Origin: Chrysemys picta bellii
Taxonomy: Eukaryota
Assembly: GCF_011386835.1 (NCBI RefSeq)
Contig: NC_088791.1
Span: 347,820,001-347,884,000 of the forward strand
Direction of reading: 5' to 3'
Length of the DNA: 64,000 bases
A program made the position numbers and the translations under genes. The notes below the pieces were generated by a model, which was not told where the DNA came from, made no database searches, and saw only the letters and a program-made list of their open reading frames with translations. This document shows, piece by piece, positions 11,818 through 56,495 of the stretch (position 1 is its first letter; every line of letters starts with the position of its first letter).

Positions 11818-16475
<4,658 letters not shown>

Positions 16476-20664: not shown

Positions 20665-23600
20665 TCAGTCCAGGCCAGTGTAGGTGAGTTCGGCCATGCC
20701 GTCGGGGATGGCCCGGAAGTACTCCAAGCTGGTCCTGTGCATCTTGCACTGGTACTTGCCACAGGTCTTGACGTACTGCAGGAAATGGGGCGCGCCGGGG
20801 AAGACCACGTTGTCGGCCACAATGGTGGCTCCCTCGAGCAGCAGGCCGTGGGCCTCCAGCAGCTGCAGGTCCCGCAGGTAGCAGCGCTTCCAGTGGTCCA
20901 TGAAGACAAAGTCGGCCTTGAGCAGGCCGTGCTTCTCCTTCAGCTGCGGGATCACCTCCTCTGAGGCGCCCACAATCAGCTCCACCTGCGCTGGGGAGAG
21001 GTGGGGAGGTCAGCGGGGGGTCCCCCCCAATGAACAGCATGGCCCTCCTGCGGGATTTCATGGCACGGTGCAAACCAAGGGGCCAACCAGCCTGGGATCG
21101 GCCCTTTAAAATGCAACCGTCTCTGGGGCGGAATTCAGCAGCTTGTTCAACAGCCAACTGGAACGCTGCTCGGCCATTTGAGACAGGAAGTGGAGAGGAG
21201 TAGCTCAGCCAGTTGAAACCACAGGGGGACCGGAGGCAATTGACACTCAGATCACACAGTCTGGGGAAGTGAGGCTACGAGATTGGGCGTTAACCAGTGT
21301 CTGGGCCAAATTCCGAGCCAAGGAATTCTGTTCTCCCATCTGCAATTCCCTTGGCTGGGGCCTATGCTGGCTGCTGCCCCCCGGTGCTGGAGCAGAAACG
21401 CTGTCGGGTTCTGCCCCCAGAACCACTCTCTCCTGGCAGCCTCTTTTCACTGAGGCTAGTTCAGAATAAGCTGGGAGCCAGCCATGCCTCTATAGTCCAT
21501 GGAAAGCACTGGGGGAGGGGGCTACTCACAGTGTCCTCGTCGAAGCCGGCCAGGCGGATGACCTTCTCGGCCACTGCGGCATTGCGTGGGTCCATCTCCA
21601 CGGTGTAGAGCCGGGCACCCATGGGCAAACACTGGGCCATGAGGATGGTGGCGTAACCACAGTACGTGCCCAGCTCTAGCACGGTGAGCGGCGTGTTCTC
21701 ATAGATCAGACGGTCCAGGATCTTACCTAGAGGGCAGAAGGAGCCTCGCCAGGTCAGCTCACCTGGAGATGCGCGCGCCCCCTCCAGCCCCACACTCTAG
21801 GTAACCCACCCAGAAGGTGGAAAAGCCTGATGGGGCCATCTGGGCTCCCCAACCTTGGCCAGGGCAGGACTGTCCCCTGAGGTCTGTTCCCCAGGGCTCT
21901 GTCCTCTCCAGTTCTGATCACCCCAGGTAACACGGCTCCTAACCGGGGGAACTGATGTAAATCAAAAAGCGTTAAATCACCAGTTTTAATCGGCAAGGAG
22001 GAAACCTTGTTTTAAATCATCCATTTCAATCACGTTTTGCATTTGTACTTTTTCGTTACGTTTCCTCATGAAAGATTGTGGCTCACTGGTTTGTTACCAT
22101 TGAAACATGTTGAGTTGCAAATAAATCTAGCCTCTGTAACTAAATGGGGGGCTTGTTTTGCCAACCTCCCGGAGGCTGAGCGACAGCTATACACATTGAC
22201 TTAAGCAATGACTTCGCTTCATGGGCATTTCTTTAGATTCTTCATTTTTAGGTTTTTTTGTGTTAGAAAATTGTGAATGATGCATTTCCTTTTACTAGAT
22301 GGTTAACTTTTTACTTGTGATTTGTGTGAAGATCTATTTGAATAGAAATTCAAATTCAATTAAAAATGCAAAAGAAAAAAAAGAAAAATTTAAACTAAAA
22401 CTACCTTACATATGCTCAGGGCCGCCGAGAGCGGGTTCGGGCCCCCCAGCAAGGGCGGTGAAAATTTTTTTTCCGGGTCCCCCGGCAAGGGCGGACCGGC
22501 TAAACAGGGCCAACGAGAGCGGGGGAAGCCGGGCCCTGGGCCCCCTTCTGGACCGCCGGGCTCCGGTAAGGCGACGAGAGGGAGGGAAGCCGGGCCCTGG
22601 GCCTCCTTTCAGACCGTCGGGCCCCAGTAATTTGTACCGGCTTTTACCCCCCTCGTCGGCCCTGAATATGCTGCATACATAAGAAAAAAAAGTTTATCAA
22701 AACATATTTTTTATGTAAAACTAACTGATTTATTAAACCAAGGAAGTATGATGTGTCGTTAGTGAACTGAACTGATTGTTTCTGGTCACCACGTCCTTCA
22801 AGATTTTAGAACTAGTCGATCTCACCCTCTCACATACCTTGTTTTTATTCAGAGATTGGAAAAGGAATACAAGCTTTCCTGCTTTTTCAATTCTCACCTG
22901 GTTTAGGACATTGAATGAACTAGTCATTGAATCAAAGTGGCTGAATAAACTGAAATGAAGAAAATATTCTCGTTGCAGCCGTAGAAAAGGCTACTGGTAT
23001 CAAAAGCTCGTTTAGCCCTTCAACAAAGTCTGGGTCCAAGGTCCGGTGACTTCCACCAGTTCAGTAATTTCACTTTTTGAAAAACTTGGCAGCAAACATG
23101 CACTACTTAGTATTTTGTGTATTTAATTTAGATTCTAATAAATTATAATAAGTTTAGGCCTTAACATAGGTTGCCAATTTCAAATTTAATTTTAAAGAGG
23201 TTTATTTAAATCCAAATAAACCTTGTATTTAATTTAAATGTTAAAAAATCCAATTTAAATAAAATAAAATCTGTTTTTTTTTTTAAATCATCCTTTTTTA
23301 TCCATCCTGGCTCTCAGCCTCACCATCTGAGTGATGCTTCCCAGAGATCCTGTTCTTGGGACAATGTCTTTGAGAGGCTACCGAAAAGTCCCACTTCACC
23401 CCATTACTTCCAGCTGCTTCTAAGGAGGCAGAATGGCCTTGTGGTCAAGACACAGGGTTTGGCATTAGAGCTCCTAGGTTCTGCTCCCAAGTGCTGCCAC
23501 AGTGATCTCAGGCAAGTTACTTTCCTGCTTGGTGCCTCAGTTTCCCTGTCTGCAAGGAAGGTAGCAGTTAGAGGCTAGTGTTTGTACAGGGCCTTTAGGT

Positions 23601-26600
23601 GCTGTGTCAGTGCTGAATAATAATAAACATTTGGCGCTCCTTGAAGGGTAGGTGCTAGAATAGGGCAAACTCTGAGTTTTCTTCACTGCCTTAAATGATT
23701 CCCCCCACTCCTTGACTTTTTACACCCTGGAACTCAGTTTACAAGTGGCTTTGCTCAATTCCTCGCATAGATCAGACTCTGTCCAGCAGAGGGCGATGAT
23801 GACATATACATAGCGGCTCTTATAAATAGTCCCCGTTCCTCCCAACCATATCCCATTCCTCCCAGGAAAGCTCTAATGGGGGGGTGATGCTGCTGGAGAG
23901 ATTCCCCTCCCCGGCTCCCCACCAGCTAACAGGGAATGCAGCCCCCACTGCTGATGTCCCACGTTGTTCAAGGGGAGGCGCTGGGTTAAGCACAGCTGTG
24001 CTCCCCCATACATGCCACCCCAGCTGCGGGTGGGACTACGTGATGTGCTGGCCCTATAGACAGCAGGCAATTTCTCCCCCTACCCTCAAACTCGCTCGCG
24101 CGCCTCCCGACGACGCAGCCCTGTTCTCAGCGCGCGTCTGGCAGGCGGGTCCGTAATCACGGAGCACTTTAGTCTGTGCCGTGGGCTCATGGCAGTGAAA
24201 GGCCAAAGGGTTTTGCAATGCTGGGACCACTGCCCTAACGCGCCAGCCATCAGCCTGAGCAAAGAATGGGGCCGCCGGCTGCGGCAGTCTCAGAAGGCAG
24301 GGAGTGTGCACTGCACGTAGGGGGACATTTACCTCTGGCACCACATACAGTCTCAAAATGGGGTTTCAGTGGGACTCCTAGGGTACTGGCTGTGACACTC
24401 CGCACCCCATACTCACCATAGGAATATGATTATGATATAATTATGATGCATCTTGTACAGATATGTCATTGCAGCCAAAGACTGAACGGCCGGGGAGGCT
24501 AATTCCCCCATCCCCTAGATCAGGGTTCCTGCAGGTCTGGGGATACTTCACTGAGGCTACTGGAAACAGAGACCCCGTGGTTCTCACTGGCCCCCAGGGC
24601 TCAGTGGCTGACGCAGCCTGTGCTGTTTAGTTTCCTGGCACGGCTCCTCCCTGAGGCCTGGGCTGGCAGCTGTGGACGGGACCCCCCGGGACACGGCTCT
24701 CCCGATAGCGTGCTGCTGCTCTCCGGTCCCCCGAGGAAAGCCGGGGTCTAGGCTGGCCATCGTGAATCAGCGCTGGGCCAGACCCAGGTGTATTTGTTTC
24801 CTGGCACGGCCCTGGCGTGTTTCCAACGTCAGCACCTCCCACCCAAAGCGGCTGCTCTGTCCTCCCAGGCTCAGCAGGCTGGAAACTTAACCCTCTGCCT
24901 GCAGCTCCTGGTATAAACCAGGGGACCCTCCCCCCTCCTCCACAGGGAGCGCAGCTGAGCAGGGGGCAGGTCTGGCCAGGCCGGCTTCCCCACACTGCTC
25001 CCTCTGTGGGAGCCAGGCATTGCCCGGACCAGGGACCCTGCCCGAGCTGGCTACTTCAGGCACCCGCAGCCCTGGGCTGGCTCATTTTAGGAGGGCTTGG
25101 GGGGCTGTAGCAGGAAGGCTCCCTGGAAGTCAGTCTCAGACTCCTCACCAGGAACTCTCCCTCCTGGCCTGCTCACTGGAACATCCTAGCTGTGGGGGGC
25201 TGGGGCTGGCCTCGCCTGCCCAGGCCTGCTGAGAGAACAAAGGGAGGGCCTAGATGAGCTCCCCTGTAGCTCCAGGGGAGCTACCCAGGGCTTGGGGAGC
25301 CAAGGGAGCACGGTTCTAATCCTAGCTTCCCACATGGGAGTGTTCATTAGTGATTGTGTCTATAGGAGACATTTTCATCCCCTCCCACTGGGAGGCCAGG
25401 AGTCTGTTCTTCCCCCAGCGTGGGGGCTTCTGCTGCAAAACTCTTCCCCATGGAGCCATCTAGTGAGGATTCAAACCCCCTGTGATGTTGCAGTCTATAT
25501 GATTTTATAAAATATGCTAATGAGTGAATATAATGTAACTGGAATATGCTTCGTGCAAAAGGTCTCTTGTAAAGTATCATTACAAAGCTCATAATCTACT
25601 GAGTGTGATCATCCTATTAGTATAAACGTACCACTCTTGTATCTGAACCTAGAAATATAAAATATAACTCTGAGGACCTATTGTCATTATGCAAAGTTTG
25701 GGCCATTAATGGTGGTTTGGAATCTTGATGACTCCCATTAACCAGGACAATTGTCTGCAGGTGGCTGTGTTTTACCTGTAAGTCTCCCTGTATATGTGTG
25801 CTGGCAAGTGGGCAATGAAGTCTTGCAGTGACATGTGATCATGTCACCTGAACTGGAATCCATTTTTAACCTGGTGCATTTCCAGTGAAGGGGGGTGGAA
25901 ACCCATAGGGACAAAGGGTTCCCGCCTTATGCAAAAGATATATAAAGGGGTGGAAGAGAACAAAGGGAAGGAGGAGCCAGCATGAGGAATCCCCTAGCTA
26001 CCACCTGAGCTGGAACAAGCTCTGTACCAGGGGAAAGAATTTTGCCCAGGCCCGGAAGGTGTCCAGTCTGAGGAAAAAACGTACTGAAGCATCTCTGAGG
26101 GTGAGATTATCTGTATTCAGTTTGATTAGACATAGATTTGCCCATTTTATTTTATTTTGCTTGGTGACTTACTTTGTTCTGTCTGTTACTACTTGGAACC
26201 ACTTAAATCCTACTTTCTGTATTTAATAAAATCACTTTTTACTTATTAATTAACCCAGAGTATGTATTAATACCTGAAGGAGCAAACAGCTGTGCCTATC
26301 TCTCTATCAGTGTTATAGAGGGCGAACAATTGATGAGTTTCCCCTGCATAAGCTTTATACAGGGTAAAACGGATTTATTTGGGTTTAGACCCCATTGGGA
26401 GTTGGGCATCTGAGTGCTTCTGAGTGCTAAAGACAAGCACACTTCTGTTAGCTGTTTTCAGGTAAACCTGCCGCTTTGGGGCAAGTGATTCAGACCCTGG
26501 GTCTGTGTTGGAGCAGACGGAGTGTCTGGCTCAGCGAGACGGTGCTGGGGCCCCAAGCTGGCAGGGAAGGCAGGGGTAGAAGTAGTCTTGGCACATTGGG

Positions 26601-27934
26601 TGGCAGCTCCCAAGGGGGTTTCTGTGATCCAACCCGTCACCCCCCAATCTGGCTTAGCTACAGCTGCTGCTTTGACTACTAGGCAGCATGGTCCTGGCTA
26701 ACAGAGCTCGCTCTCTAGAAGCCTTGGAGGGGAAAGGTCGGGCAGCTCCCGCAGCAGCTATTCTAGAGCCAGATCTATTTTGAGGGAAGAATCCCTGCGC
26801 TGGCCTCGCACACTCGACCGACGTCCACGGATAGCGCAGAGTTCCCTGCAGAACGTGCATTCATTCTGGCTCTGCCAGGGTGGGGTCTCAGGCCTGGCTC
26901 ACGTGGAATTTGACTGGGCTAAAGAGAATGACAGCGTCTGGGTGCTAAATGTTAATCCCCTGCACAGGTCTGTCCTGCCCACCCGCCTCTGCCTGGTTCA
27001 AAGGGAGAACAACAGCACAAAGACACCATGATGAGCTGGCTAGTGGCTGTGTGCACCACTGCCCTGTTCTAGGTGGAGTCAGGTCTGCTCTCCTGTGTGT
27101 CATAAGCCCTATACTGCACAGCTGTTAATGGGGATTCTCACTTGGCAGAGGCTGGAGCAGAAGGAGCTGCGTTCCATGCCCAGTGTTGAAGTTCTGAGCA
27201 ATCATGCTGGACAGCACAGGAATGTAGTAAGAGGGCCAGGCTGGTGCTGGGGCAGAAGCCCTGCTGTTGTCACCACAGTATATGATTCAGCAGGGAGCGT
27301 GCTGGGGCAGCACTGAATTAAGGCCCCAGTGTGATGATGAGGGGCTGCATAGGGCAGGAGGGGACATAAAACGCGTTACTTGTGGCCACTAACGCTCACC
27401 GGGTATTTCTCACACGAGTTGTGGGGTTAATGCATGATATAAAAACGTAATAGAATGAGACTGAACTCCTGTGTCCTGGCCAAATTCCATCTGGGGTAAT
27501 TACAGTACTTTTTACACCTCCCTACATTGCCAGTGGATTTGCTATTTCCCCCCTCTTCCTCTCTCAAATGGTCATGTGACGTTGCTGTGTGCTGTTGAAC
27601 CGCTGCTGGGTTCCGCCCCAGAGGCGGCTGCATTTCAGTGCCGCACCCCCTCCAGGCTGGGCGAGCCCTTACCTTTGTGAGGCCCCACGTTGCTGAGGTA
27701 CTCGCAGTGGTAGCACCACTGGTCGAAGGTCTCGAGGATGTGGTGGGGGTCGCCGGGGATGGCATGCGTGAGGACGTACTGGAAGGCCCGCTCCTCCCGG
27801 GAGATGCCCGTCAGGCAGTCCTGCAGCCGGCGCACCAGCACCGCCCGGTAGAAGAGCAGGAAGTAGTGCCGGTAGCGGATGATCAAGGTGACCAGGAAGG
27901 GGATGAAGGCCAGAGCAATGGCTGGGGAGACCAT
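20665..27934 (-). CDS. TOMT: Transmembrane O-methyltransferase; exons 27934-27673, 21726-21530, 20985-20665 (780 nt, 259 aa)
   Basis: N-terminal TM segment [25 protein letters not shown]; SAM-binding [10 protein letters not shown]; DHWK, DNV and LEY motifs. Intron phases 1 and 0 join in frame. Lies convergent with ANAPC15, as in human. Confidence 0.95.
21945..23310 (-). mobile_element. Decayed hAT transposon with a transposase C-terminal remnant (TOMT intron 1); boundaries approximate
   Basis: Minus-strand remnant near 22830-22990, ...RIFSSF...[17 protein letters not shown], resembles the hAT dimerisation domain; AT-rich subterminal ATTTAAAT repeats. Confidence 0.55.
22417..22664. mobile_element. 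GC-rich hAT MITE nested in the decayed hAT element
   Basis: TIRs CAGGGCCG / CGGCCCTG; TSD catatgct/aatatgct. Confidence 0.8.
25481..26640 (+). mobile_element. Solo LTR, about 1.16 kb (TOMT intron 1)
   Basis: TGTGATG...GTCAC termini flanked by ccccc on both sides; internal TATA-like gatatataaa and AATAAA. Confidence 0.75.
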
Positions 27935-33921: not shown

Positions 33922-36900
33922 TCAGACATTCTCCAGTGTCACAGGGTCGCCGAGCAGTTTGTAGCAGATCACAAAGTAGGGGTAGCACTGGGAGTTGTCG
34001 AAGATCACGTAGACGCCGGGCTTGTGGGCGTTGTCGCTGCAGGAGTCGTAGCGACACCTGCAGGATTCCCTCACCGGCGGCTGGGTGTACCCGGGACTCC
34101 CTAACACCCACTTGCCCACCAGGACCTTGGCCAGGAACATGTGGCGGCGGTCGGCGCGGTTGGCCAGAGCGAAGATGTGGGCGCAGTTGGCGTAGCAGGA
34201 GAAGTAGCTGCCATGGCCGTACTGGGCACCATGCTTTCCAGAGAGATGGGGGTTAAAGTTCGCCCGGCAGATGGGCTCCACGTTGTCGGCTGAGGTCCCG
34301 TGGAAGAGGTGCCTCTCCAGGAGCCGCATCTCCTGGGCCAAGAGTCCTCGGGACATTCGCTCCTTCTGGCTGAGGTGGGTGTAAAGGATAAACAAGGGGG
34401 TTTAGAGTCACTGCTGGTGCACCCCCACTATCTGCTCCCCTGGCCACTGAACACCTCAGCGGGGGATCCAGACACGAGCCCAATTCCCTCTATGACGCGT
34501 ACGTTCTCTCTTCTTGCTGTCCTGCATCTTCCTCACTAAACAGCTCGGCATCTCCTGCCCGGTCAGGTGCTGCACCGCCTGCCTCAGGCGACTCCCCTCA
34601 ACCCCACTCCTCTCTCTGCTCAGGATTCTCCCAGCTCCCTCTCCTCTCCTGGGTCCATCCCACCCCGCTTCCTCTCCTCCACCCCAGGCTCTGGCTGGGA
34701 CGTGTCTCTTCTTCTCTCAACCTCCAACCCCATCACTCACTTGTCTCTCTCACCCCCTCGCTCATCATCGTCAGCCTCTCTACCCTCTGCCTCCTTTCCC
34801 TCGGCCTTCCTTTCCCTCGGCCTCCCCAATTCACCACAGAGCGTTCCTTCACCACGACCTGCTCTCCAGCAGCTGGCCCGTTTCCCTTCGCCTCCAAACT
34901 CCTCATTGCCTCTTCCTCTCATCCCGCCCTCAGTCCCCCCAATCTGCCCCCAAGACTGTTCCCAGGTGGCTCCTTCAGGCCCGGGCGAGGGCCCCCCCTC
35001 ATCCTGATGCATCTCTCCCTCCCCTGGGCATCCCATGATGCTGTGCTGTCCCGGCTCCCAGCCCCTCAGCCTTCATGCCCCTCCTCACAGCACGCCTCTT
35101 TCCTGAAGCCCTCTGAAGTCTTTCTGTCGAGCCGGATATGGTTGGAAAGGACACGCTCCAGGTCAGCCGCAAGACAACAGGGTTGGAGTCGCTGAGGAAA
35201 ATTCTGAGGCCAGATGATTGTACCCCTGCGATGGGTCTCCTGAACCAACCCTTAGATACTCCTCCCTTAGGCCCACCCAGAGAAGATAACCCACCTAGTC
35301 ATGCCCACAGCACCGGCGTCAATGGCTTAATGGTGGGGTTAAAGCCGGTGACCTGGTCTGACCCCTGCCCCATCTCTTGCAGAATCCGTTCCTCTTCCTA
35401 CCTGCTGTATTTTTTCCAGAGTGCATCGTTCCGGATCCTGTAAATCTTCAGCACCAGCACCATGTCCTCTGGGACAGACGCGTGGAAGAGCTCACAGATC
35501 TTGCGGTACACCGCTTCCGACGAGGCCACCTCTGCATGAAGGAAGGCCTGGCCACAGGGCGGCTGGGGAACCCAGGCGGCTGGGTATGGGCCACAATACC
35601 CGTCTGTGGGTCTCTCCCCGGGGATGATGGATGTGGAAAGATGGAAGAGTCCCCAGGAGCCCCTAGGGACTGTCCTAAGGAGATAAGGAGATGGGAGATG
35701 CTGGCCAGTCAGAACGTAGCTTGGATCCCTCCAGCCATGGAACTGCCCAGGGAGTCACTTACCGCAGATACCGTGCCATGCAGCTCAGGGAACGGTAGGC
35801 AGGTCGGCGCTGGATCTGGATGGGTTGGACAGATCTCTGGCCTTCAGTGCTCCACTGAGGGGGTCTCAGATCCAGGGTGTAGAGCCTGCCCTGGAGCCAA
35901 AAGGTGGGTTCCTGGGAGCCCCTCTCCAAGGCTGCGAGGAGGTCGCGGGGGACAGGCTGAGCAGAGAGCGGAAGGAAAGTCGAGCCCTTAGCGTGACTGA
36001 AAGAGGAAAACCCTTACACGCATTGCTCCTTGCCACAGGACCCAGTCCTGCCCTGGAGGAACCGTCCAGTCCCGGGAAACCAGTCTCCAGCTTCATCCAA
36101 CCCTGGGCCGGCCATCCCATCTCCCCGGGATGCGCCAGCCCTACTTTGGAGAGCTCCCCCTCGCCCCCCCTTTGGGATCCCCCTCCCCCTTCACCTCCTG
36201 GTAACGCTGCCACGTGTCTCTGTGCTTCCAGTACACCTGCCACCTGGTGTGGAAGCGAGGATTCTGCTTCCAGTCCGAGGTGCTGCCCAGCCGCCTCACT
36301 CCATTAATCACGTCCGAATAGTCCATCTCCATGGTGTCCAGGTCCAGGATCCCAGACAACTGGTTCCTAAGAGGGGAAAATAATCTCACCTGTCGGCCCT
36401 AGGGGGCCCTTTTCGGGGAGGGGTCGGGACCGGGGTTCCCCAAACCACCTACAGTGGGGGAAATCTGAGGCACTCCCAGTACGCGGCTCCTTCCGCTTTT
36501 CCCTAGAGCTTCTGACCGGGAGACGCTGGGGAACCTGCCTAGCCAGCACTCCTGCCCTGGCTGGGATGGGAGCAGCTGGGAGATCGCTCCCCAGAGCCTG
36601 GTGCAGGCCCCCGTGGGGACAGACGGGGCGGGAGCGTTCCCATCCCGTACCTGCCCAAGAACCGCACGAGGCCATTTGTAGCGTCGCTGTAGAGCTTCTC
36701 CAAGTGACGCTGAGACGAGTCGCTCAGACTCTGCCACTCCACCCTTCTGCTCCCCCTGATCTGCCAGTGGAAGGGGTAGCGGGTGTGGTGGAGTGGGCAG
36801 CTCTCCCTCCGGGGGCAGTGCCCGAGCAGGAAGCCGTCACAGATCTGGATGCCGTCTTCCTGGTGGACATGGAAGGGGACCCCGTCCTTGCTGACCCATC

Positions 36901-38223
36901 GCTCCGTGGAAGGTGGGAAGCTGCACCAGCGTTTGGCAGGCATGGGGGATGGACTCTGGGGGGCCGCATCCCTCGTGGATGACGTAGGGGAGCCAGGGCT
37001 CACAGTGTCGGAAGAACTCAGATCCTGGATAGTTTGGGGAGCGGGAGAGATGGAGACACTTTAAGACAGGGGCGGGCAAACTTTTTGGCCTGAGGGCCAC
37101 ATCGCGTTTAGGAAATTGTATGGAGGGCCGGTTAGGGGAGGCTGTGCCTCCCCAAACAGCCAGGCGTGGCCCGGCCCCCACCCCCTATCCGACCCCTCCT
37201 GCTTCTCGCCCCGATGCCCCGCCCGGACTCCTGCCCCATCCAACCCCCCCGTTCCCTGTCCCCTTACAGCCCCCAGAAGCCCCGCCCCTGAGTGCCCCCC
37301 GCCACCCCATCCAACCCCTCCTCTCATTCCTGACTTCCCCCTCAGGACCCCTGCCCCATCCAACCACCCCTTCTCCCTGTCCCCTTACCGCCCCTGGAAC
37401 CCCTGCCCCTAACTGCCCCCTGCTTCCCCATCCAACCCCTGCTCCTTCCTGACTGCCCCCCCCAGGACCCCTGCCCCATCCAACCACCCCTTCTCCCTGT
37501 CCCCTGACCGCCCCTGGAACCCCTGCCCCTGACTGCCCCCCGCCGCCCTATCCAACCCCCCCTCCTTCCTGACTGCCCATCCGGGACCCCTGCCCCCATT
37601 CAACCCCCCCTGTTCTCTCCCCAACCACCCTGCTCCCTAGCCACACCCCCGCCTCCGGACCACACCCCCGAACTCCCCTGCTCTCTATCCAACTCCCCCT
37701 GCTCCCTGCCCCCTTATCGCGCTGCCTGGAGCACTGGTAGCTGGAGCCAGCCATGCTGTCGCCACGGCGCAGCACAGAGACCGGGGCAGGCCGGGCTCTG
37801 CAGCGGCACTGCCCCAGGAGCTCGCAGTCCCACTGCCCAGAGCATTGCGCCGGCGGTGGAGGGAGCTGAGGAGGCGGGGGAAGGGAGACAGCTGGGGAGG
37901 GGCCAGGGCGAGCCTCCCGGGCCAGGAGCTCAGGGGCCGGGCAGGAGGGTCCCACAGGCCGGATGTGGCCCGCGGGCCATAGTTTGCTCACCTCTGCTTT
38001 AAGGAGATGCGAAGCTGCTCTGGGACTCGGCCGCACCTACCCCCTTATCCTCTGCCCCCTCCCCATCAGTGTCTTCATCCCCCCTCCACGCATACAGACC
38101 CGCACGGCTCCCCCCATCAGAACCAGCTCTCCTGGGCTCCAACCCATCCCCCCCAGCCTTGCCCTGCAGGGACCCGTCCTCCTGGGCCCCGAGAGGGGAA
38201 TTCCCTCCATTTCGGTGGCTCAT
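33922..38223 (-). CDS. TIPARP/PARP7-like mono-ADP-ribosyltransferase paralogue; exons 38223-38041 (tentative), 37024-36651, 36366-36195, 35956-35763, 35674-35402, 34369-33922 (1644 nt, about 547 aa)
   Basis: CCCH finger ICDGFLLGHCPRRESCPLHH, WWE region WQVYWKHRDTWQRYQE / IQRRPAYRS, and PARP domain ERHLFHGTS...GHGSYF...MFLAKVLVG...YDSC...VYVIFDNSQCYPYFVI. All introns are GT-AG and phases 0,2,0,2,2 keep one open frame. An alternative acceptor 12 nt downstream at 35662 is also in frame. Not TIPARP itself by synteny. Confidence 0.85.
37067..37996. mobile_element. hAT MITE in the first predicted intron of the TIPARP-like gene
   Basis: TIRs CAGGGGCGGGCAAACT / AGTTTGCTCACCTCTG; TSD ctttaaga/ctttaagg. 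Confidence 0.82.
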
Positions 38224-41661: not shown

Positions 41662-44600
41662 TTAGCACTGGATCTTCCGCACCGCCCGGGTGAATTTCTT
41701 CAGCTCCCTCTCCCCTCGCTGCCACCTCCTCACCCAGGAGATGACCAAGCGGCCGGCTGCCTTGTGGCCCATGGCCAGGACCACGGTCCCCTGCCCGCGG
41801 AGTTCTTCGCAGGCGCAGGTCTCGCCATGTGTCAGCCAGAGGACTGGCTTCTTCAGCTCTTCTTCCGACCAGCCTCCCTGCTTGTAGAGGGTCCGGCTCT
41901 TAAGCTCCGGGGTCACTTTCAAGTCTCCGTCCGCGCTGGACAGCGCTTTGATGCTCATTTTCAAGGCTGCGGGAGAGAGGGAGTCAGTGAGTGTTGAACA
42001 GAATGCAGGGAAACAAAGGGGGCGCTCGGCCAAACGGAAGCGGCTCAAAGGAATGACAAAAAACTCATCTGTGGAACTTGCTGCTGCAGGAAAGTACAGC
42101 GGCAGCCAGCGCAGTGAGAATTTTAGAAGGACTAGATGTTGCTAAGAGGAGCGTCTGACTCTGCAGTGACATGAGCTTAGGATATAACTGTAAGGGCGAC
42201 TGTAGTTGGCCCATTTAATGAAGCAGGGCTCAGTGTGTGCCCAGCTGGGCTAATGAAGAGGGCAGGGCTGCACCCTGGGGCTATACGAGGCCTCAGAGAG
42301 AGCTGCTAGAGACAGAAGGTGGGTCCTGGGAGAGGGTGGAGGCAGGAGAGCGGCAGACGGAGATGCCCGCTGGCTCTAAGTCGGAGAGCTGGAACCAAGG
42401 GCCAGAGAAGGCTGGAGGTAGGGGAGCAGCAGAGGGGCTTACCCACTGGATCTCCTTGCTGCGGGGCTGGGTGCCAGAGGAACCCTGGGAGGCTCCCAGC
42501 GGAGAAGCTGTGGGGTTTCCCGCTGGGAAGAGTGGGGCTGTACCCCAGAAGGAAGGACTGGGGTGGCTGTCCCAGCAAAGGTGGACTGTTAAGAGTCCAG
42601 GTCTGGTGGGAGACACCAGGATGGAGGAGGAAGCCGGGTTTTAAAGCCCACATGCACAGGTGGTGACATGGACGATGCTGGCTGTGGACTTAGGCACTGC
42701 CTTCTGCTAATAACCCGTGATGGACCGGAGGGCAGGCTTGTACTGAAGTTACTGGGGTCCAAGCGGGAAACTGAGGCGAGGGGCCGCTTGCAGAGCTGCC
42801 CTGAGGCCATGAGGTGCCCGGGAGGAGCGACCATCCCACGTGCCTCTGGGCGTAACGTGACCACGGGCAGGGATCAGGAAGGAGCTCTTCCCCACCCCTG
42901 GTGGAGACGCTGAATCAGGCACATCGCAGGGATGCCTGCCTTACGATGACCAGTCTGGGACCAACTGCTGCTCTAGGTGGACACTGGTCTGTTCCAGGAG
43001 GGGACAAGTTGTTTTTTGCCCCTCGCCCCCAGCCGCCCCCTCTCCTCTCAGCTGACGAGTCTGATTTTCCAGCTGACAGCTGCGGGGGAGCCCTGACGTT
43101 TTCGACTCACCAAAATCTTGGCTGCAGAAGTTTTCCAGGAACTCCTTTTCGCTGTGCCCTCGGCTGATACAGGCTGTGCACACTGCGTCTGGCAGGGAAA
43201 GAAACAGCTGCATTGAGAACAGCGAGCAAGGAACTGTCTGTGACAGCACAACCCAGATCAGGGCTGAAGAACGTTTCTTCGGTTTTACATAGAGCAGAAA
43301 TCACATCTGCCTCTCCTGGAAGCCTCTATGGATGACTGGAGAGCTGGTCTCTGTGCAATTCAACCTGATTAACGGAGATGCAAAGGGATTTTAACTCAGA
43401 TTTTGTAAATCTTTTTTTTTTATTTTGGTTTTCGCTAACAACCAGGGCCGGATGAACCTTTTGTGGGCCCTGTCAGCCCGGTCCGTGGCCACGCCCCACA
43501 CTCTGCCCCAAGGCCCCACCCCCGCTCGGCCTCTTCCCCTGAGGCCCCGCCCACTGCTCACACCGGGAGGAGAAGGCAGAGAGGAGCAGGCAGCGGTTGG
43601 GGGGGCGGGTAGAGACGAGCAAGTGGTGGGCAAGGCAGGGAAGGGGCAGAGAGGAGAGAGCGGGGGGCGGTACCTCAGGGGGAAGAGGCCGGGCGGGGGC
43701 GGGGGCGGGGCCTCAGGGCGGAGCACAGGCAGAGCAGTGGGCGTGGCCACAGTCCGGGCACCGGGGCCCCTTCTGAGTGTGGGCCAGACGCCACTGGTGC
43801 CATTGTAAACCCGCTTCTGCTAACACCTAATTGTGGGGTTACCAGATAGCAACTGCGAAAAAACGTGACAAGGGGTGGGGGGTAAAAGTCCCAAAACACG
43901 GGACTGTCCCTTTAAAAACAGGGCATCTGGTCACCCTAGCTAAGGGTCTCAACTGCCTGAAAACACTTGGAGGAAACCTCTCTTTGTTACGGATCCAGCA
44001 CCTCGGGGCTTTCAGACACAGCTTGAGAAAGCTCACAAGCCACATTCCTGTGCCCTTCAGTGACTTTTCCCGGCAAAACCAGAACTGACGTTCCTGATAT
44101 TTTAAGGTAAAACACAAAGTGAGAAATCAATCGTTTTTAAAAGGCACTTTTCAGACCTTCCTTATACATCCCAGAGAAACAAAAACTGGCATCAAGAAGC
44201 CAGGCTTTCCCTTTTGTCGGTCACCCGTCACTGAATTAAGCCTGGAAACACTGGAGTTCAGAGTCGGGAGGAAAGCTCCGAGAACGAGTCATGCTCTGAA
44301 AAACACCCCTCCCAGCGCAGTCTATTCAGCTTCTCAGTGAGACGCTTGAGATGCGGGACAGCTGTGACGATCAGTCGCAGACCCATCGGTGGCATCTCTC
44401 AGCAAGGCCTGGGGGATTTCAAATAAGGGACAGGTGGGCTTCTCAGCCTCGGCAGGCCGCTCACTTAGGAGAAGGAAAACTCCGATTTCAAACCAGAGGG
44501 TCAGGTGTGGCCAGATGACCTGTACAGCTCACCCAGGGGATATGCTCGTTGGCCTGGCGTATGACCGGGAGTTTTAGAAGAAGGCTATAAAAGTCGCCAG

Positions 44601-46247
44601 CCCCGACCAGGGCCATGTGAGGAGAAGAGGAATGAGAAGGTAGATGGGTGAGTTGATCATAGGGTGACCAGATGTCCTGATTTTATAGGGACAGTCCCGA
44701 TTTTTGGGTCTTTTTCTTATATAGGCTCTTATTACCCCCCACCCCCTGTCCCTATTTTTCACATTTGCTGTCTGGTCCCCCTAGTTGATCATGGTCTATA
44801 AGCACCTACATGCGGAGAAGACTGCCCATGCGGGAGGACTCTTTAATCTAGCAAAGCTCCAACAGCCAACGGCTGGACGCTGAAGTCAGCAAAGGTCAAA
44901 CTGGAAAGGGGACACAGATTTTTAACAGTGAGGGTCATTAACCATTGGAACCGTTTTTCAAGGGACGGGGTCCATTCTCAGAACCGTCACAGCGCGCCTA
45001 CAAGTTACGCTCTCATTCCACCGCAAGGCATTTGGTCCTTTGCAGGAATCGCTGGATGGAATTCCATAGCCTGCAGGAGCTGAGACTGGATCCCGGCTAA
45101 TCTTAAAATCTATAATCTACGCTGGCGACGAGGGTGATATAAATATATCTAGACCAGGGGGCGGCAACCTTTCAGAAGCGCTGTGCCGAGTCTTCATTTA
45201 TTCACTCTGATTTAAGGTTTCGCGTGCCAGTCATACATTTTAACGTTTTTAGAAGGGCTCTTTCTATAAGATACAACTAAACTATTGTATGTAAAGTAAA
45301 TACGATTTTTAAAATGTTTAAGAAGCTTCATTTAAAATTAAATTAAAATGCAGAGCCCCCCGGACCGGTGGCCAGGACCCAGGCAGTGTGAGTGCCACTG
45401 AAAATCAGCTTGCGTGCCGCCTTTGGCACCCGTGCCATAGGTTGCCTACCCCTGATCTAGACCGAGAGACCAGGGCATTTCTTACAGACGCGCTACGTTT
45501 CCAGGCCACTGCGCTCTGCCTGGCCCCTGGCATTTGGAGAGAGACTTAATCAAATGCTTGAACTTTTGGGGGGGCAGTAACGTGATACACAAGCATGCAA
45601 ACAGCTGCAGGCCGCACAGTTAAACAGGAACAGGCATCCAGCGACCCTGAACCGGAGCCAAAGCTTGATTGTGATGACCTGACGTTGAACCTTTGGTGCC
45701 TTTGCCAGGATCTCCAGGCTAAACACCGAGCGCCGCCTGGCTGCTTGGCCTCACCTTCCTTCGTGAGCTGGAGTCGGTCGTCCGGGCCGGCCAGCGGGAC
45801 GCACAGTTCGTTCCCCTGAGGGAACCTGCTGCAGTCGAACATCTCAGGCCAGGGGAAGCCAAAGGCAGCCATGACAGGGGTGCAGCCATCTCTCACCGCC
45901 TCGCAGAGGGACCTGCAAGGGTAGACGGGATCCTCCAGGTCGCTGATGCACACGGGGGCGAAGAGGGAGCACAGGAATTTCTTGGTGTCCCCGTGGCACT
46001 GCTTGGTGAGCAGCGGCACCCAGGAGGCGGCTTGCTGCAGAGCTTCCTTCATGCTCTCGTGGCCCAGCAGGTTGGGCAGACGCATCTCGTTGTACCCGAC
46101 CCCGTGGCAGAGGGTCATGCTGCTGGGGATGGGCTTGCAGCTGCTCCGCTGGGAGCTGAGCCGGGCCAGCTGGTAGGTGAAAGGAGCAGCCAGAGAAGGG
46201 GAGCGCCACGTCCACGCCACGAGGACGAGGAGCAGCAGGACGTCCAT
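41662..46247 (-). CDS. SFRP2L: Secreted frizzled-related protein 2-like (candidate Tlc/sfrp2l orthologue); exons 46247-45755, 43188-43111, 41966-41662 (876 nt, 291 aa)
   Basis: Signal peptide, Frizzled CRD with all 10 Cys (SCKPIP...MRLPNLLGHE...DTKKFLCSLFAPVC...AFGFPWP...LCVP) and NTR domain with 6 Cys ending RKIQC*. Two phase-1 introns. SFRP2-type diagnostic residues. Confidence 0.9.
43443..43819. mobile_element. GC-rich hAT MITE (SFRP2-like intron 1)
   Basis: CAGGGCCGGAT start, degenerate right TIR; TSD ctaacaac/ctaacacc. Confidence 0.65.
44660..44783. mobile_element. 124-bp hAT MITE (Tip100/MER96-like), inverted relative to 6663-6785
   Basis: TIRs TAGGGTGACCAGA / TCTGGTCCCCCTA; perfect TSD gttgatca. 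Confidence 0.88.
44810..45120 (+). mobile_element. Old CR1 3' fragment
   Basis: ...aaattcaaactggaa-like agcaaaggtcaaactggaaaggggacacagatttttaacagtgagggtcattaaccattggaac, followed by a degenerate CR1 tail. Confidence 0.6.
45155..45454. mobile_element. 300-bp hAT MITE
   Basis: TIRs CAGGGGGCGGCAACCT / AGGTTGCCTACCCCTG; perfect TSD atctagac. Confidence 0.88.
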
Positions 46248-51126: not shown

Positions 51127-51995
51127 GCTAAAACAACAAGGAGTCCTTGTGGCACTTTAGAGACTAACAAATTTATTTGGGCATAAGCTTTCGTGGGCTA
51201 GAACCCACTTCATCGGATGCATGGAGTGGAAAATATAAGAGCAGGTATAAATACTTGAAAAGATGTGAGTTTGCCTTACCAAGTGTGAGGTCAGTCTAAC
51301 GAAACTATTCAATTAACAGCAGGATACCAAGGGAGGAAAGATAACTTTTGAAGTGGTAATGAGAGTGGCCCATTTCAGACAGTTGACAAGAAGGTGTGAG
51401 TAACAGTAGGGGGAAATTAGTCTTGGGGAAATTAGGTTTAGGTTTTGTAATGACCCAACCACTCCCAGTCTTTATTCAGGCCTAATCTGATGGTATCCAG
51501 TTTGCAAATTAATTCTAGTTCTGCAGTTTCACGTTGGAGTCTGTTTTTGAAGTTTTTTTGTTGAAGAATTGCCACTTTTAGGTCTGTTATTGAGTGATCA
51601 AGGAGGTTGAAGTGTTCTCCGACTAGTTTTTGAATGTTATGATTCCTGATGTCAGATTTGTGTCCATTTATTCTTTTGTGTAGAGACTGTCCGGTTTGGC
51701 CAATGTACATGGCAGAGGGATATTGCTGGCACACGATGGCATATATCACATTAGTAGATGTGCAGAACAAGCCCCTGATGGTGTGGCTGATGTGGTTAGG
51801 TCCTATGATGGTGTCCCTTGAATAGATATGTGGACAGAGTTGGAACCGGGGTTTGTTGCAGGGATTGGTTCCTGGGTTAGTGTTTTTGTTCTGAGGTGTG
51901 TAGTTGCTGGTGAGTATTTGCTTCAGGTTGGGGGGCTGTCTGTAAGCGAGGACTGGCCTGTCCCCCAAGGTCTGTGAGAGTGAGGGAGCTAAGAG
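51127..51995 (-). mobile_element. 5'-truncated Penelope-like retroelement with GIY-YIG endonuclease remnant and terminal repeat
   Basis: ORF 51438-52034 contains RPVLAYRQPPNLKQIL...NVIYAIVC...MYIGQTGQSLHKRINGHKSDI...VGEHFN; the 3' terminal repeat matches 12178-12290. Confidence 0.9.
51181..51220 (-). ncRNA. Minimal type I hammerhead ribozyme motif with variant core (CCGAUGA)
   Basis: Minus strand reads GCAU CCGAUGA A GUGGG uucuag CCCAC GAAA GCU UA UGC. Confidence 0.6.
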
Positions 51996-52389
51996 TAAGT
52001 GGCTAGAGCGCTGCAGATCCCCACACAGTAACATAACTCCAGGAGATTATTCTGTGACAGTGAAATACTCAAAGCACCAGCAGGACTTTGCCAGTTACAA
52101 GCTGGAAATAGAAATCAAGAGACTCAGCCCACATGGAAACCCAAAGAGGAACAGCTCTGTAGCTCATGTGATGGAAGAGAGATTAAAACTGAAACGCATT
52201 TTCTACTCGACTGTTCAAAATATGAAGCAAGAGGGGAAAGCAGCTTCCTCAAATCCTCTCAGAAAACCCTAAAAAGCCAGGAAGAAAAATGGAGCTGAGT
52301 TTGGTTAGGAGAAGTGAAAGAGACAGAAAAATCCTAGGCTGGCGCCTCACTGAACTTCATTTCATTTTGGCAATTTCATCCCTAACTGT

Positions 52390-56453: not shown

Positions 56454-56495
56454 ATGGGGTGCTGCTATAGCAGCGAGAACGAGGCCACCGACCAG
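56454..56495 (+). CDS. LAMTOR1: Ragulator subunit LAMTOR1 (p18), coding exon 1; later exons not found in the window
   Basis: Strong Kozak gccATGG; MGCCYSSENEATDQ then a GTGAG donor. Matches the LAMTOR1 N-terminus (Gly2 myristoylation, Cys3/Cys4 palmitoylation) and the synteny. Confidence 0.92.

Follow-up and report, generated by a model that had tools for sequence, protein, structure and literature searches.

A three-exon SFRP2-like gene beside TOMT in the painted turtle, very probably the orthologue of an ancient SFRP2 sister

A 64,000-nucleotide stretch of the painted turtle genome (Chrysemys picta bellii, contig NC_088791.1, forward-strand positions 347,820,001 to 347,884,000), hereafter the window and numbered from its first letter, carries a complete secreted frizzled-related protein (sFRP) gene on its minus strand, flanked in the order ANAPC15 (+), TOMT (-), TIPARP-like (-), sFRP gene (-), probable LAMTOR1 (+). 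Phylogenetic placement of its exons and its position next to the transmembrane O-methyltransferase gene TOMT indicate that it is very probably the orthologue of the bony-vertebrate gene called SFRP2-like, an ancient sister of SFRP2 encoding a putative Wnt antagonist. Textbooks count five sFRPs in amniotes, with Crescent and Sizzled in addition in birds, and to our knowledge nobody has studied SFRP2-like in amniotes. The gene is neither turtle-specific nor unannotated: proteins named 'SFRP2-like' already exist for turtles, tuatara, squamates, crocodilians, amphibians, coelacanth, lungfish and ray-finned fishes, and one bird protein is named 'SFRP2'. An earlier note on this DNA, which presented the gene as a candidate amniote Tlc, thus overstated its novelty.

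The SFRP2-like gene and its protein

The interval from start codon to stop codon spans exactly 41662-46247 on the minus strand and is divided into three coding exons. Exon 1 (46247-45755, 493 nt) begins with the ATG at 46247, ends at a donor GT at 45754-45753, and contains the start codon, the predicted signal peptide and the entire Fz domain, corresponding to residues 1-164 and the first base of codon 165. Exon 2 (43188-43111, 78 nt; acceptor AG at 43190-43189, donor GT at 43110-43109) encodes a linker and the beginning of the NTR domain, including three cysteines (AVCTACISRGHSEKEFLENFCSQDF). Exon 3 (41966-41662, 305 nt; acceptor AG at 41968-41967) supplies the remainder of the NTR domain with three further cysteines and ends in TGC TAA (TAA at 41664-41662), such that the protein stops at the NTR domain, with RKIQC directly before the stop codon. 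The exons sum to 876 nt (291 codons and a stop), both introns are in phase 1, and the frame has no internal stops and 16 cysteines (10 + 3 + 3). Gapless alignments pair the exons with residues 1-164, 166-190 and 192-291 of the RefSeq 'SFRP2-like isoform X3' of the sea turtle Lepidochelys kempii, with identities of 94.5%, 96% and 98%, respectively. All SFRP2-like loci examined (turtle, bird, zebrafish and shark) have three coding exons, and exon 2 was recovered in the bird, the zebrafish and the shark.

The gene encodes a complete sFRP of the SFRP1/2/5 type. A signal peptide (46188..46247, minus strand, about residues 1-20, MDVLLLLVLVAWTWRSPSLA), judged by eye from a hydrophobic core followed by SLA/AP, is predicted ahead of the Fz cysteine-rich domain (CRD), which occupies residues 37-145 (45813..46139, minus strand), contains 10 cysteines, and matches Pfam PF01392 over profile positions 1-109 of 110 (E 1.3e-32). 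The NTR domain is recognized by Pfam in exon 3 (E 6e-8), and its six cysteines align with those of SFRP2. In a 63-sequence alignment the cysteine columns of the Frizzled-type domain are invariant, and across the whole protein the 16 cysteines show little or no variation. An AlphaFold model of the L. kempii orthologue, based on this alignment (mean predicted local distance difference test score 82.5), has an N-terminal helix at residues 2-14, a low-confidence linker, a helical CRD and a beta-rich NTR domain. The earlier note had described a three-exon, 291-residue, 16-cysteine sFRP with these coordinates, bearing SFRP2-type motifs and intact in turtles. Splice borders, frame and Pfam domains all agree with that description, the motifs DTKKFLCSLFAPVC, KPVLWL and RKIQC are found in the translated exons, and the open frame in the painted turtle is matched by intact orthologues in five turtle genera.

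Phylogenetic placement and the conserved locus

Relatives were first gathered by a word search with exon 1 (E <= 1e-10), which returned 741 proteins. The best-ranked matches were all annotated 'SFRP2-like', beginning with turtles at 95-83% identity and extending to tuatara, lizards, snakes, crocodilians, frogs, salamanders, caecilians, coelacanth, lungfish, sharks and many ray-finned fishes; a catfish-seeded search brought in further SFRP2-like proteins from cyprinids, characins and salmonids. A search seeded with shark SFRP2 recovered true SFRP2 from sharks, coelacanth, lungfish, amphibians, a turtle (Mauremys), snakes, birds, mammals, teleosts, lamprey and hagfish. SFRP2 and SFRP2-like coexist in many species, among them basking shark, coelacanth, lungfish, Pleurodeles, Pseudophryne, Hymenochirus, paddlefish, bichir, Esox, Silurus and Danio, and turtles as a group own both, each having been seen in different genera.

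A tree was determined with IQ-TREE (LG+C20 PMSF) from 70 rows and 293 columns, with invertebrate sFRPs as the outgroup, SFRP1 and SFRP5 included, and window exons 1 and 3 placed as separate rows. Tunicates and 14 further redundant or long rows were omitted; the tunicate sequences were left out because in a quick tree they joined SFRP2 through a branch 1.77 long, which we judged to be long-branch attraction. All vertebrate SFRP2 and SFRP2-like proteins, shark 'SFRP2-like' included, form one clade (support 99/98) apart from SFRP1/5 and the invertebrate sFRPs. Within it, bony-vertebrate SFRP2-like is a clade of its own (100/99) whose branching resembles the species tree, with coelacanth joining the tetrapods, then amphibians, then sauropsids. 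This clade contains zebrafish sfrp2l and both window exon rows, which nest within turtles (97/92), sauropsids (100/99) and tetrapods (99/96), while a magpie goose protein pairs with crocodile (87/91). Jawed-vertebrate SFRP2 forms a separate clade (100/99) with turtle, chicken, mammal and zebrafish SFRP2, and both window exons fall outside it. Cyclostome 'SFRP2' joins the jawed-vertebrate SFRP2 clade at 88/92, chondrichthyan 'SFRP2-like' is a clade of its own (100/100), and amphioxus 'sFRP2-like' is sister to the entire vertebrate SFRP2 and SFRP2-like clade (86/72).

On this tree, the split between SFRP2 and SFRP2-like falls after the amphioxus lineage and before the bony-vertebrate ancestor. 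The lamprey 'SFRP2' carries SFRP2-like residues in its CRD (SWVPLL, VRDSC, AAFGFPWP) yet has an SFRP2-type NTR domain, and these residues suggest that, in the CRD, jawed-vertebrate SFRP2 is the derived partner of the pair.

The gene neighborhood offers a second line of evidence, since turtle, magpie goose, zebrafish and sturgeon all have SFRP2-like as the upstream neighbor of TOMT, with both genes on one strand. In the window, TOMT (20674..27934, minus strand; blocks 27934-27668, 21727-21500 and 20985-20674) was identified by tblastn with sturgeon TOMT proteins at 65-74% identity and by the Pfam domain Methyltransf_3. A 9.7-kb contig of the magpie goose (Anseranas) carries SFRP2-like (+), TOMT (+) and ANAPC15 (-), reproducing the order and relative orientation of the window. 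In zebrafish, tomt lies approximately 3 kb downstream of sfrp2l on the same strand, with sarcolipin upstream. In sturgeon and paddlefish, the accession numbers of sfrp2l and TOMT follow one another directly, and one read-through model fuses sturgeon sfrp2l with TOMT, its halves mapping to the sFRP and TOMT exons of the window. The fused SFRP2-like/TOMT model of Acipenser sinensis is 541 residues long and is probably the reason that TOMT proteins share a 90% cluster with sturgeon SFRP2-like.

The other features of the window are as follows. The first coding exon of ANAPC15 (11818..11937, plus strand) was recognized by a motif match and by Pfam (ANAPC15, E 8e-17). A TIPARP-like ADP-ribosyltransferase gene (33922..38223, minus strand) lies downstream of SFRP2-like, its PARP catalytic domain falling in an open reading frame (ORF) at 33925-34401 (Pfam E 2.4e-16). 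It stands between SFRP2-like and TOMT in two turtles, being likewise downstream of SFRP2-like in Carettochelys. No TIPARP-like gene was found in the magpie goose or zebrafish loci (L003 810-5211; L004 10001-26142), where SFRP2-like and TOMT are 2-3 kb apart. On the other side, a probable first coding exon of LAMTOR1 (56454..56495, plus strand) was assigned by motif match only (MGCCYSSENEATDQ; MGCCYSSENE), the exon itself being too short for Pfam to recognize, and no further LAMTOR1 exons were found within the window. Between SFRP2-like and LAMTOR1, a 198-residue ORF (51441-52034, minus strand) has a borderline GIY-YIG match (E 1e-4), which was the only Pfam hit among ten long ORFs elsewhere in the window; this ORF probably represents what is left of a Penelope-like element, a retroelement.

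Tree and locus together bear out much of what the earlier note had claimed. It described the protein as clearly diverged from SFRP2, and the two indeed fall in separate 100/99 clades with 50% identity within turtles. It asked of a phylogeny whether the gene might be a recent SFRP2 duplicate, and the clade proves to span ray-finned fishes to sauropsids. Its ANAPC15-TOMT-LAMTOR1 setting is upheld by Pfam and tblastn for ANAPC15 and TOMT and by a motif for LAMTOR1, and the neighbor that it expected fish sfrp2l to share with the turtle gene exists as tomt in zebrafish and sturgeon.

The names attached to this gene call for some care. Xenopus proteins within the SFRP2-like clade go by 'secreted frizzled-related protein S homeolog' (NP_001098737.1) and, for the L copy, by plain 'secreted frizzled-related protein 2', a trap for work on frog sfrp2. 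Conversely, chick LOC417741, also named 'SFRP2-like', may be a different gene or may be the chick orthologue lying just beneath the matches listed. With the Xenopus copy named 'sfrp2' and with LOC417741 in mind, the label 'SFRP2-like' may span more than one gene.

Alternative readings and the origin of the gene

Several observations weigh against orthology of the turtle gene with an ancient SFRP2 sister, or limit how far that reading can be taken. First, searches were run with single exons or with the L. kempii orthologue, which served as a stand-in for the painted turtle protein in all full-length steps. Second, shark 'SFRP2-like' is sister to bony-vertebrate SFRP2-like in the best tree with support of 78/17, and the alternative grouping with SFRP2 is not rejected (approximately unbiased test, p 0.385). 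Derived residues E178 and L279, common to shark and bony-vertebrate SFRP2-like, favor orthology weakly, and three shark and ray 'SFRP2-like' loci had neither a called gene nor a match to TOMT, ANAPC15 or PARP within 10 kb. These shark results leave the duplication dated no more closely than before the bony-vertebrate ancestor. Third, the LAMTOR1 call derives from a single 14-residue motif. Fourth, no mammal occurs in the SFRP2-like clade among the matches listed, which cover annotated proteins rather than genomes; the unnamed transcript contigs among the relatives all resolve to fishes, squamates or true SFRP2. Finally, the single bird in the clade among the matches listed is the magpie goose, whose protein is labelled 'SFRP2, partial'.

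The magpie goose protein is 67% identical to turtle SFRP2-like and 50% identical to shark SFRP2. It is encoded on a contig of 9697 bp with 67% GC and 420 N, and assembly gaps extend into the gene; at these gaps the gene model has an X in exon 1 and is short by approximately 12 residues at the start of exon 3. The turtle exons have a GC content at third codon positions of 0.84-0.87. Because the goose contig is GC-rich and gapped and the turtle gene is similarly GC-rich at third positions, dropout from bird assemblies is as likely an explanation for the scarcity of bird sequences as real loss.

As to how the two genes arose, an early vertebrate whole-genome duplication is a plausible source, and the simplest one, an argument drawn from tree shape and from human map positions, and to that extent a further point of caution. 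One amphioxus gene against two vertebrate clades is the tree shape that a genome duplication would fit. In the human genome, SFRP2 lies beside RNF175 at 4q31.3, and RNF121 lies near LAMTOR1 and LRTOMT at 11q13.4. Human 4q31-q35 and 11q are a recognized paralogous pair (PDGFC/PDGFD, GUCY1A1/GUCY1A2, MAML3/MAML2, FAT1/FAT3).

Among the alternatives, the one that survives best holds that zebrafish Tlc, the telencephalon-inducing Wnt antagonist of the anterior neural border, has its amniote orthologue in the turtle gene, and that tlc and sfrp2l are one gene. We regard this as possible but doubtful. The zebrafish orthologue of the turtle gene is RefSeq sfrp2l (NP_001373251.1), 49% identical to the turtle protein and 38-39% identical to SFRP2 and SFRP5. 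The sFRP family has been divided into Sfrp1/2/5, Tlc/Sizzled and Sfrp3/4 (PMC2542364), and the same paper, citing Esteve et al. 2004, places Tlc with Sizzled and not with Sfrp1/2/5, which speaks against the identity; another describes tlc as 'closely related' to sfrp1 (PMC5786327), which speaks for it. No paper that we found connects the name tlc with sfrp2l (the literature on the symbol sfrp2l consists of passing mentions in stickleback and halibut studies), and the cluster of the zebrafish sfrp2l protein shows no 'Tlc' name. On the other side, zebrafish sfrp2l is fast-evolving, and the small trees of 2004-2008 could show such an orphan drawn to Sizzled. The identity keeps some standing because a long-branch zebrafish sfrp2l could have been misplaced in an old, small tree. 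A tentative scenario of no greater probability goes further, with SFRP2-like as the tetrapod counterpart of Tlc and an SFRP2 ohnologue that every non-mammalian jawed vertebrate has retained and that disappeared in the mammalian stem. If this were true, SFRP1 and others would have taken over the telencephalon role of Tlc in mammals.

It is very unlikely that the turtle gene belongs instead to the Sizzled/Crescent group of sFRPs, a 'third branch' known from fish, frog and chick, and acts mainly on tolloid proteases. Xenopus Sizzled (5XGP) is the top full-length Foldseek match and outranks all other solved structures, but the structure matches include no other full-length sFRP from that part of the family. 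In sequence comparison, turtle SFRP2-like scores 369 bits against SFRP2. Against Sizzled it scores 169 bits, shark SFRP2 scores 159 and zebrafish sfrp2l scores 140, values that do not place it closer to Sizzled than SFRP2 is. The NTR exon alone has no Sizzled match at E 0.01, and the groove residues of the turtle CRD, described below, are Frizzled-like, unlike those of Sizzled. A link to Crescent could be sought in chick LOC417741, which shares the 'SFRP2-like' name and is hypoblast-specific like Crescent (PMC7058932), but frog proteins in the SFRP2-like clade carry neither the name crescent nor frzb2, and the SFRP2-like matches listed include none from chicken. Separately, two unnamed candidate proteins were considered as Sizzled and proved not to be Sizzled, and neither Crescent nor Tlc is among the matches listed.

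Even less probable is that turtle SFRP2-like is a decaying or silent relic heading for loss, as in mammals. The gene does evolve at approximately twice the rate of SFRP2, turtle-coelacanth identity being 61% for SFRP2-like and 80% for SFRP2, and turtle-Esox identity 47% and 76%; turtle SFRP2-like and turtle SFRP2 (Mauremys) are 50% identical. The painted turtle has also lost an N-glycosylation sequon, NCS/NCT, that is otherwise conserved in the clade. It is present in nearly all sampled bony-vertebrate SFRP2-like proteins (other turtles, tuatara, lizard, crocodile, goose, frog, coelacanth, sturgeon and zebrafish) and not in SFRP2 or shark 'SFRP2-like' proteins. Codon 138 of the painted turtle gene is GAC (45834-45836), and because the resulting DCS replaces NCS/NCT, its protein is without any N-x-S/T sequon; the Gopherus model likewise lacks it. 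Against decay stand the intact frame, the canonical splice sites, the full set of 16 cysteines and the orthologues of other turtle genera. A comparison of painted turtle and Carettochelys over the three exons (822 aligned coding bases) gives synonymous divergence (dS) of 0.336 and nonsynonymous divergence (dN) of 0.059, a dN/dS of 0.18, and by this measure turtle SFRP2-like is under purifying selection.

A recent turtle- or reptile-specific duplication of SFRP2, which the RefSeq name and the motifs and exon structure held in common might suggest, is refuted by the IQ-TREE placement and can be set aside with near certainty: the window exons nest in the bony-vertebrate SFRP2-like clade apart from SFRP2, this clade holds coelacanth, lungfish, amphibians and ray-finned fishes in a species-tree-like order, Mauremys SFRP2 groups with chicken and lizard SFRP2 at only 50% identity to turtle SFRP2-like, and the TOMT linkage has been kept from zebrafish to bird.

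Predicted function and comparison with known systems

The case for the turtle gene as the orthologue of bony-vertebrate SFRP2-like leads to a prediction of function by homology, in which the protein would be secreted and act extracellularly as a Wnt antagonist or modulator. Foldseek aligned the CRD model with dozens of Frizzled CRD crystal structures at a root-mean-square deviation of 1.3-1.5 A and template modelling scores of 0.88-0.92, among them Fz8 with XWnt8 and Fz4, Fz5 and Fz7 with fatty acids. In HMMER alignments, the turtle motifs WVPLL and MAAFGFPWP correspond to FAPLV and MEQFNFKWP in Frizzled-10 and to WQNLL and LACHGHSWP in Sizzled. We take these places to be the lipid-groove positions known from the Fz8-Wnt8 structure, and we infer that the CRD would retain Frizzled-like hydrophobic groove residues for the Wnt lipid. 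By analogy with SFRP1, SFRP2 and SFRP5, the CRD groove and the NTR domain would most likely act together to sequester Wnts from Frizzled receptors, and an additional action on BMP1/tolloid proteases, comparable to that of SFRP2 and Sizzled, is possible.

The value of these results lies in evolutionary placement rather than in discovery, the gene being in public databases already. In reptiles and in at least one bird there is an additional SFRP2 sister under constraint that seems to be lacking in mammals, which is relevant to how Wnt antagonism is shared among paralogues in early head, limb or shell patterning.

SFRP2 itself is the closest point of comparison, as the sister clade with which SFRP2-like shares a predicted signal peptide, a 10-cysteine Fz domain, a 6-cysteine NTR domain, and the motifs DTKKFLCSLFAPVC, VLWL and RKxQC. 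SFRP2-like differs from it in its TOMT-side locus, its twofold rate, seven clade-diagnostic residues, and in having no mammalian member among the matches listed. Zebrafish sfrp2l and the RefSeq 'SFRP2-like' genes of fishes, amphibians and reptiles have the same exon blocks and are orthologous by tree and by tomt linkage. Unlike the turtle protein, teleost SFRP2-like is longer (approximately 310-340 residues) and more diverged, with an NTR domain below the Pfam threshold, and the turtle loci differ from fish sfrp2l loci in the TIPARP-like gene that separates SFRP2-like from TOMT. Amphioxus sFRP2-like (Kong et al. 2012), on a long branch, represents the single pre-duplication relative, co-orthologous to both vertebrate genes. 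Xenopus Sizzled (PDB 5XGP, 7EL5) shares the two-domain CRD and NTR fold at approximately 35% identity to turtle SFRP2-like; its Frizzled-like groove residues are replaced, and it is related to SFRP2-like no more closely than to SFRP2. Zebrafish Tlc (Houart et al. 2002), which antagonizes Wnt at the anterior neural border, resembles SFRP2-like in being a fish sFRP without a named mammalian counterpart, and differs from the SFRP2-like described here in having been grouped with Sizzled (PMC2542364).

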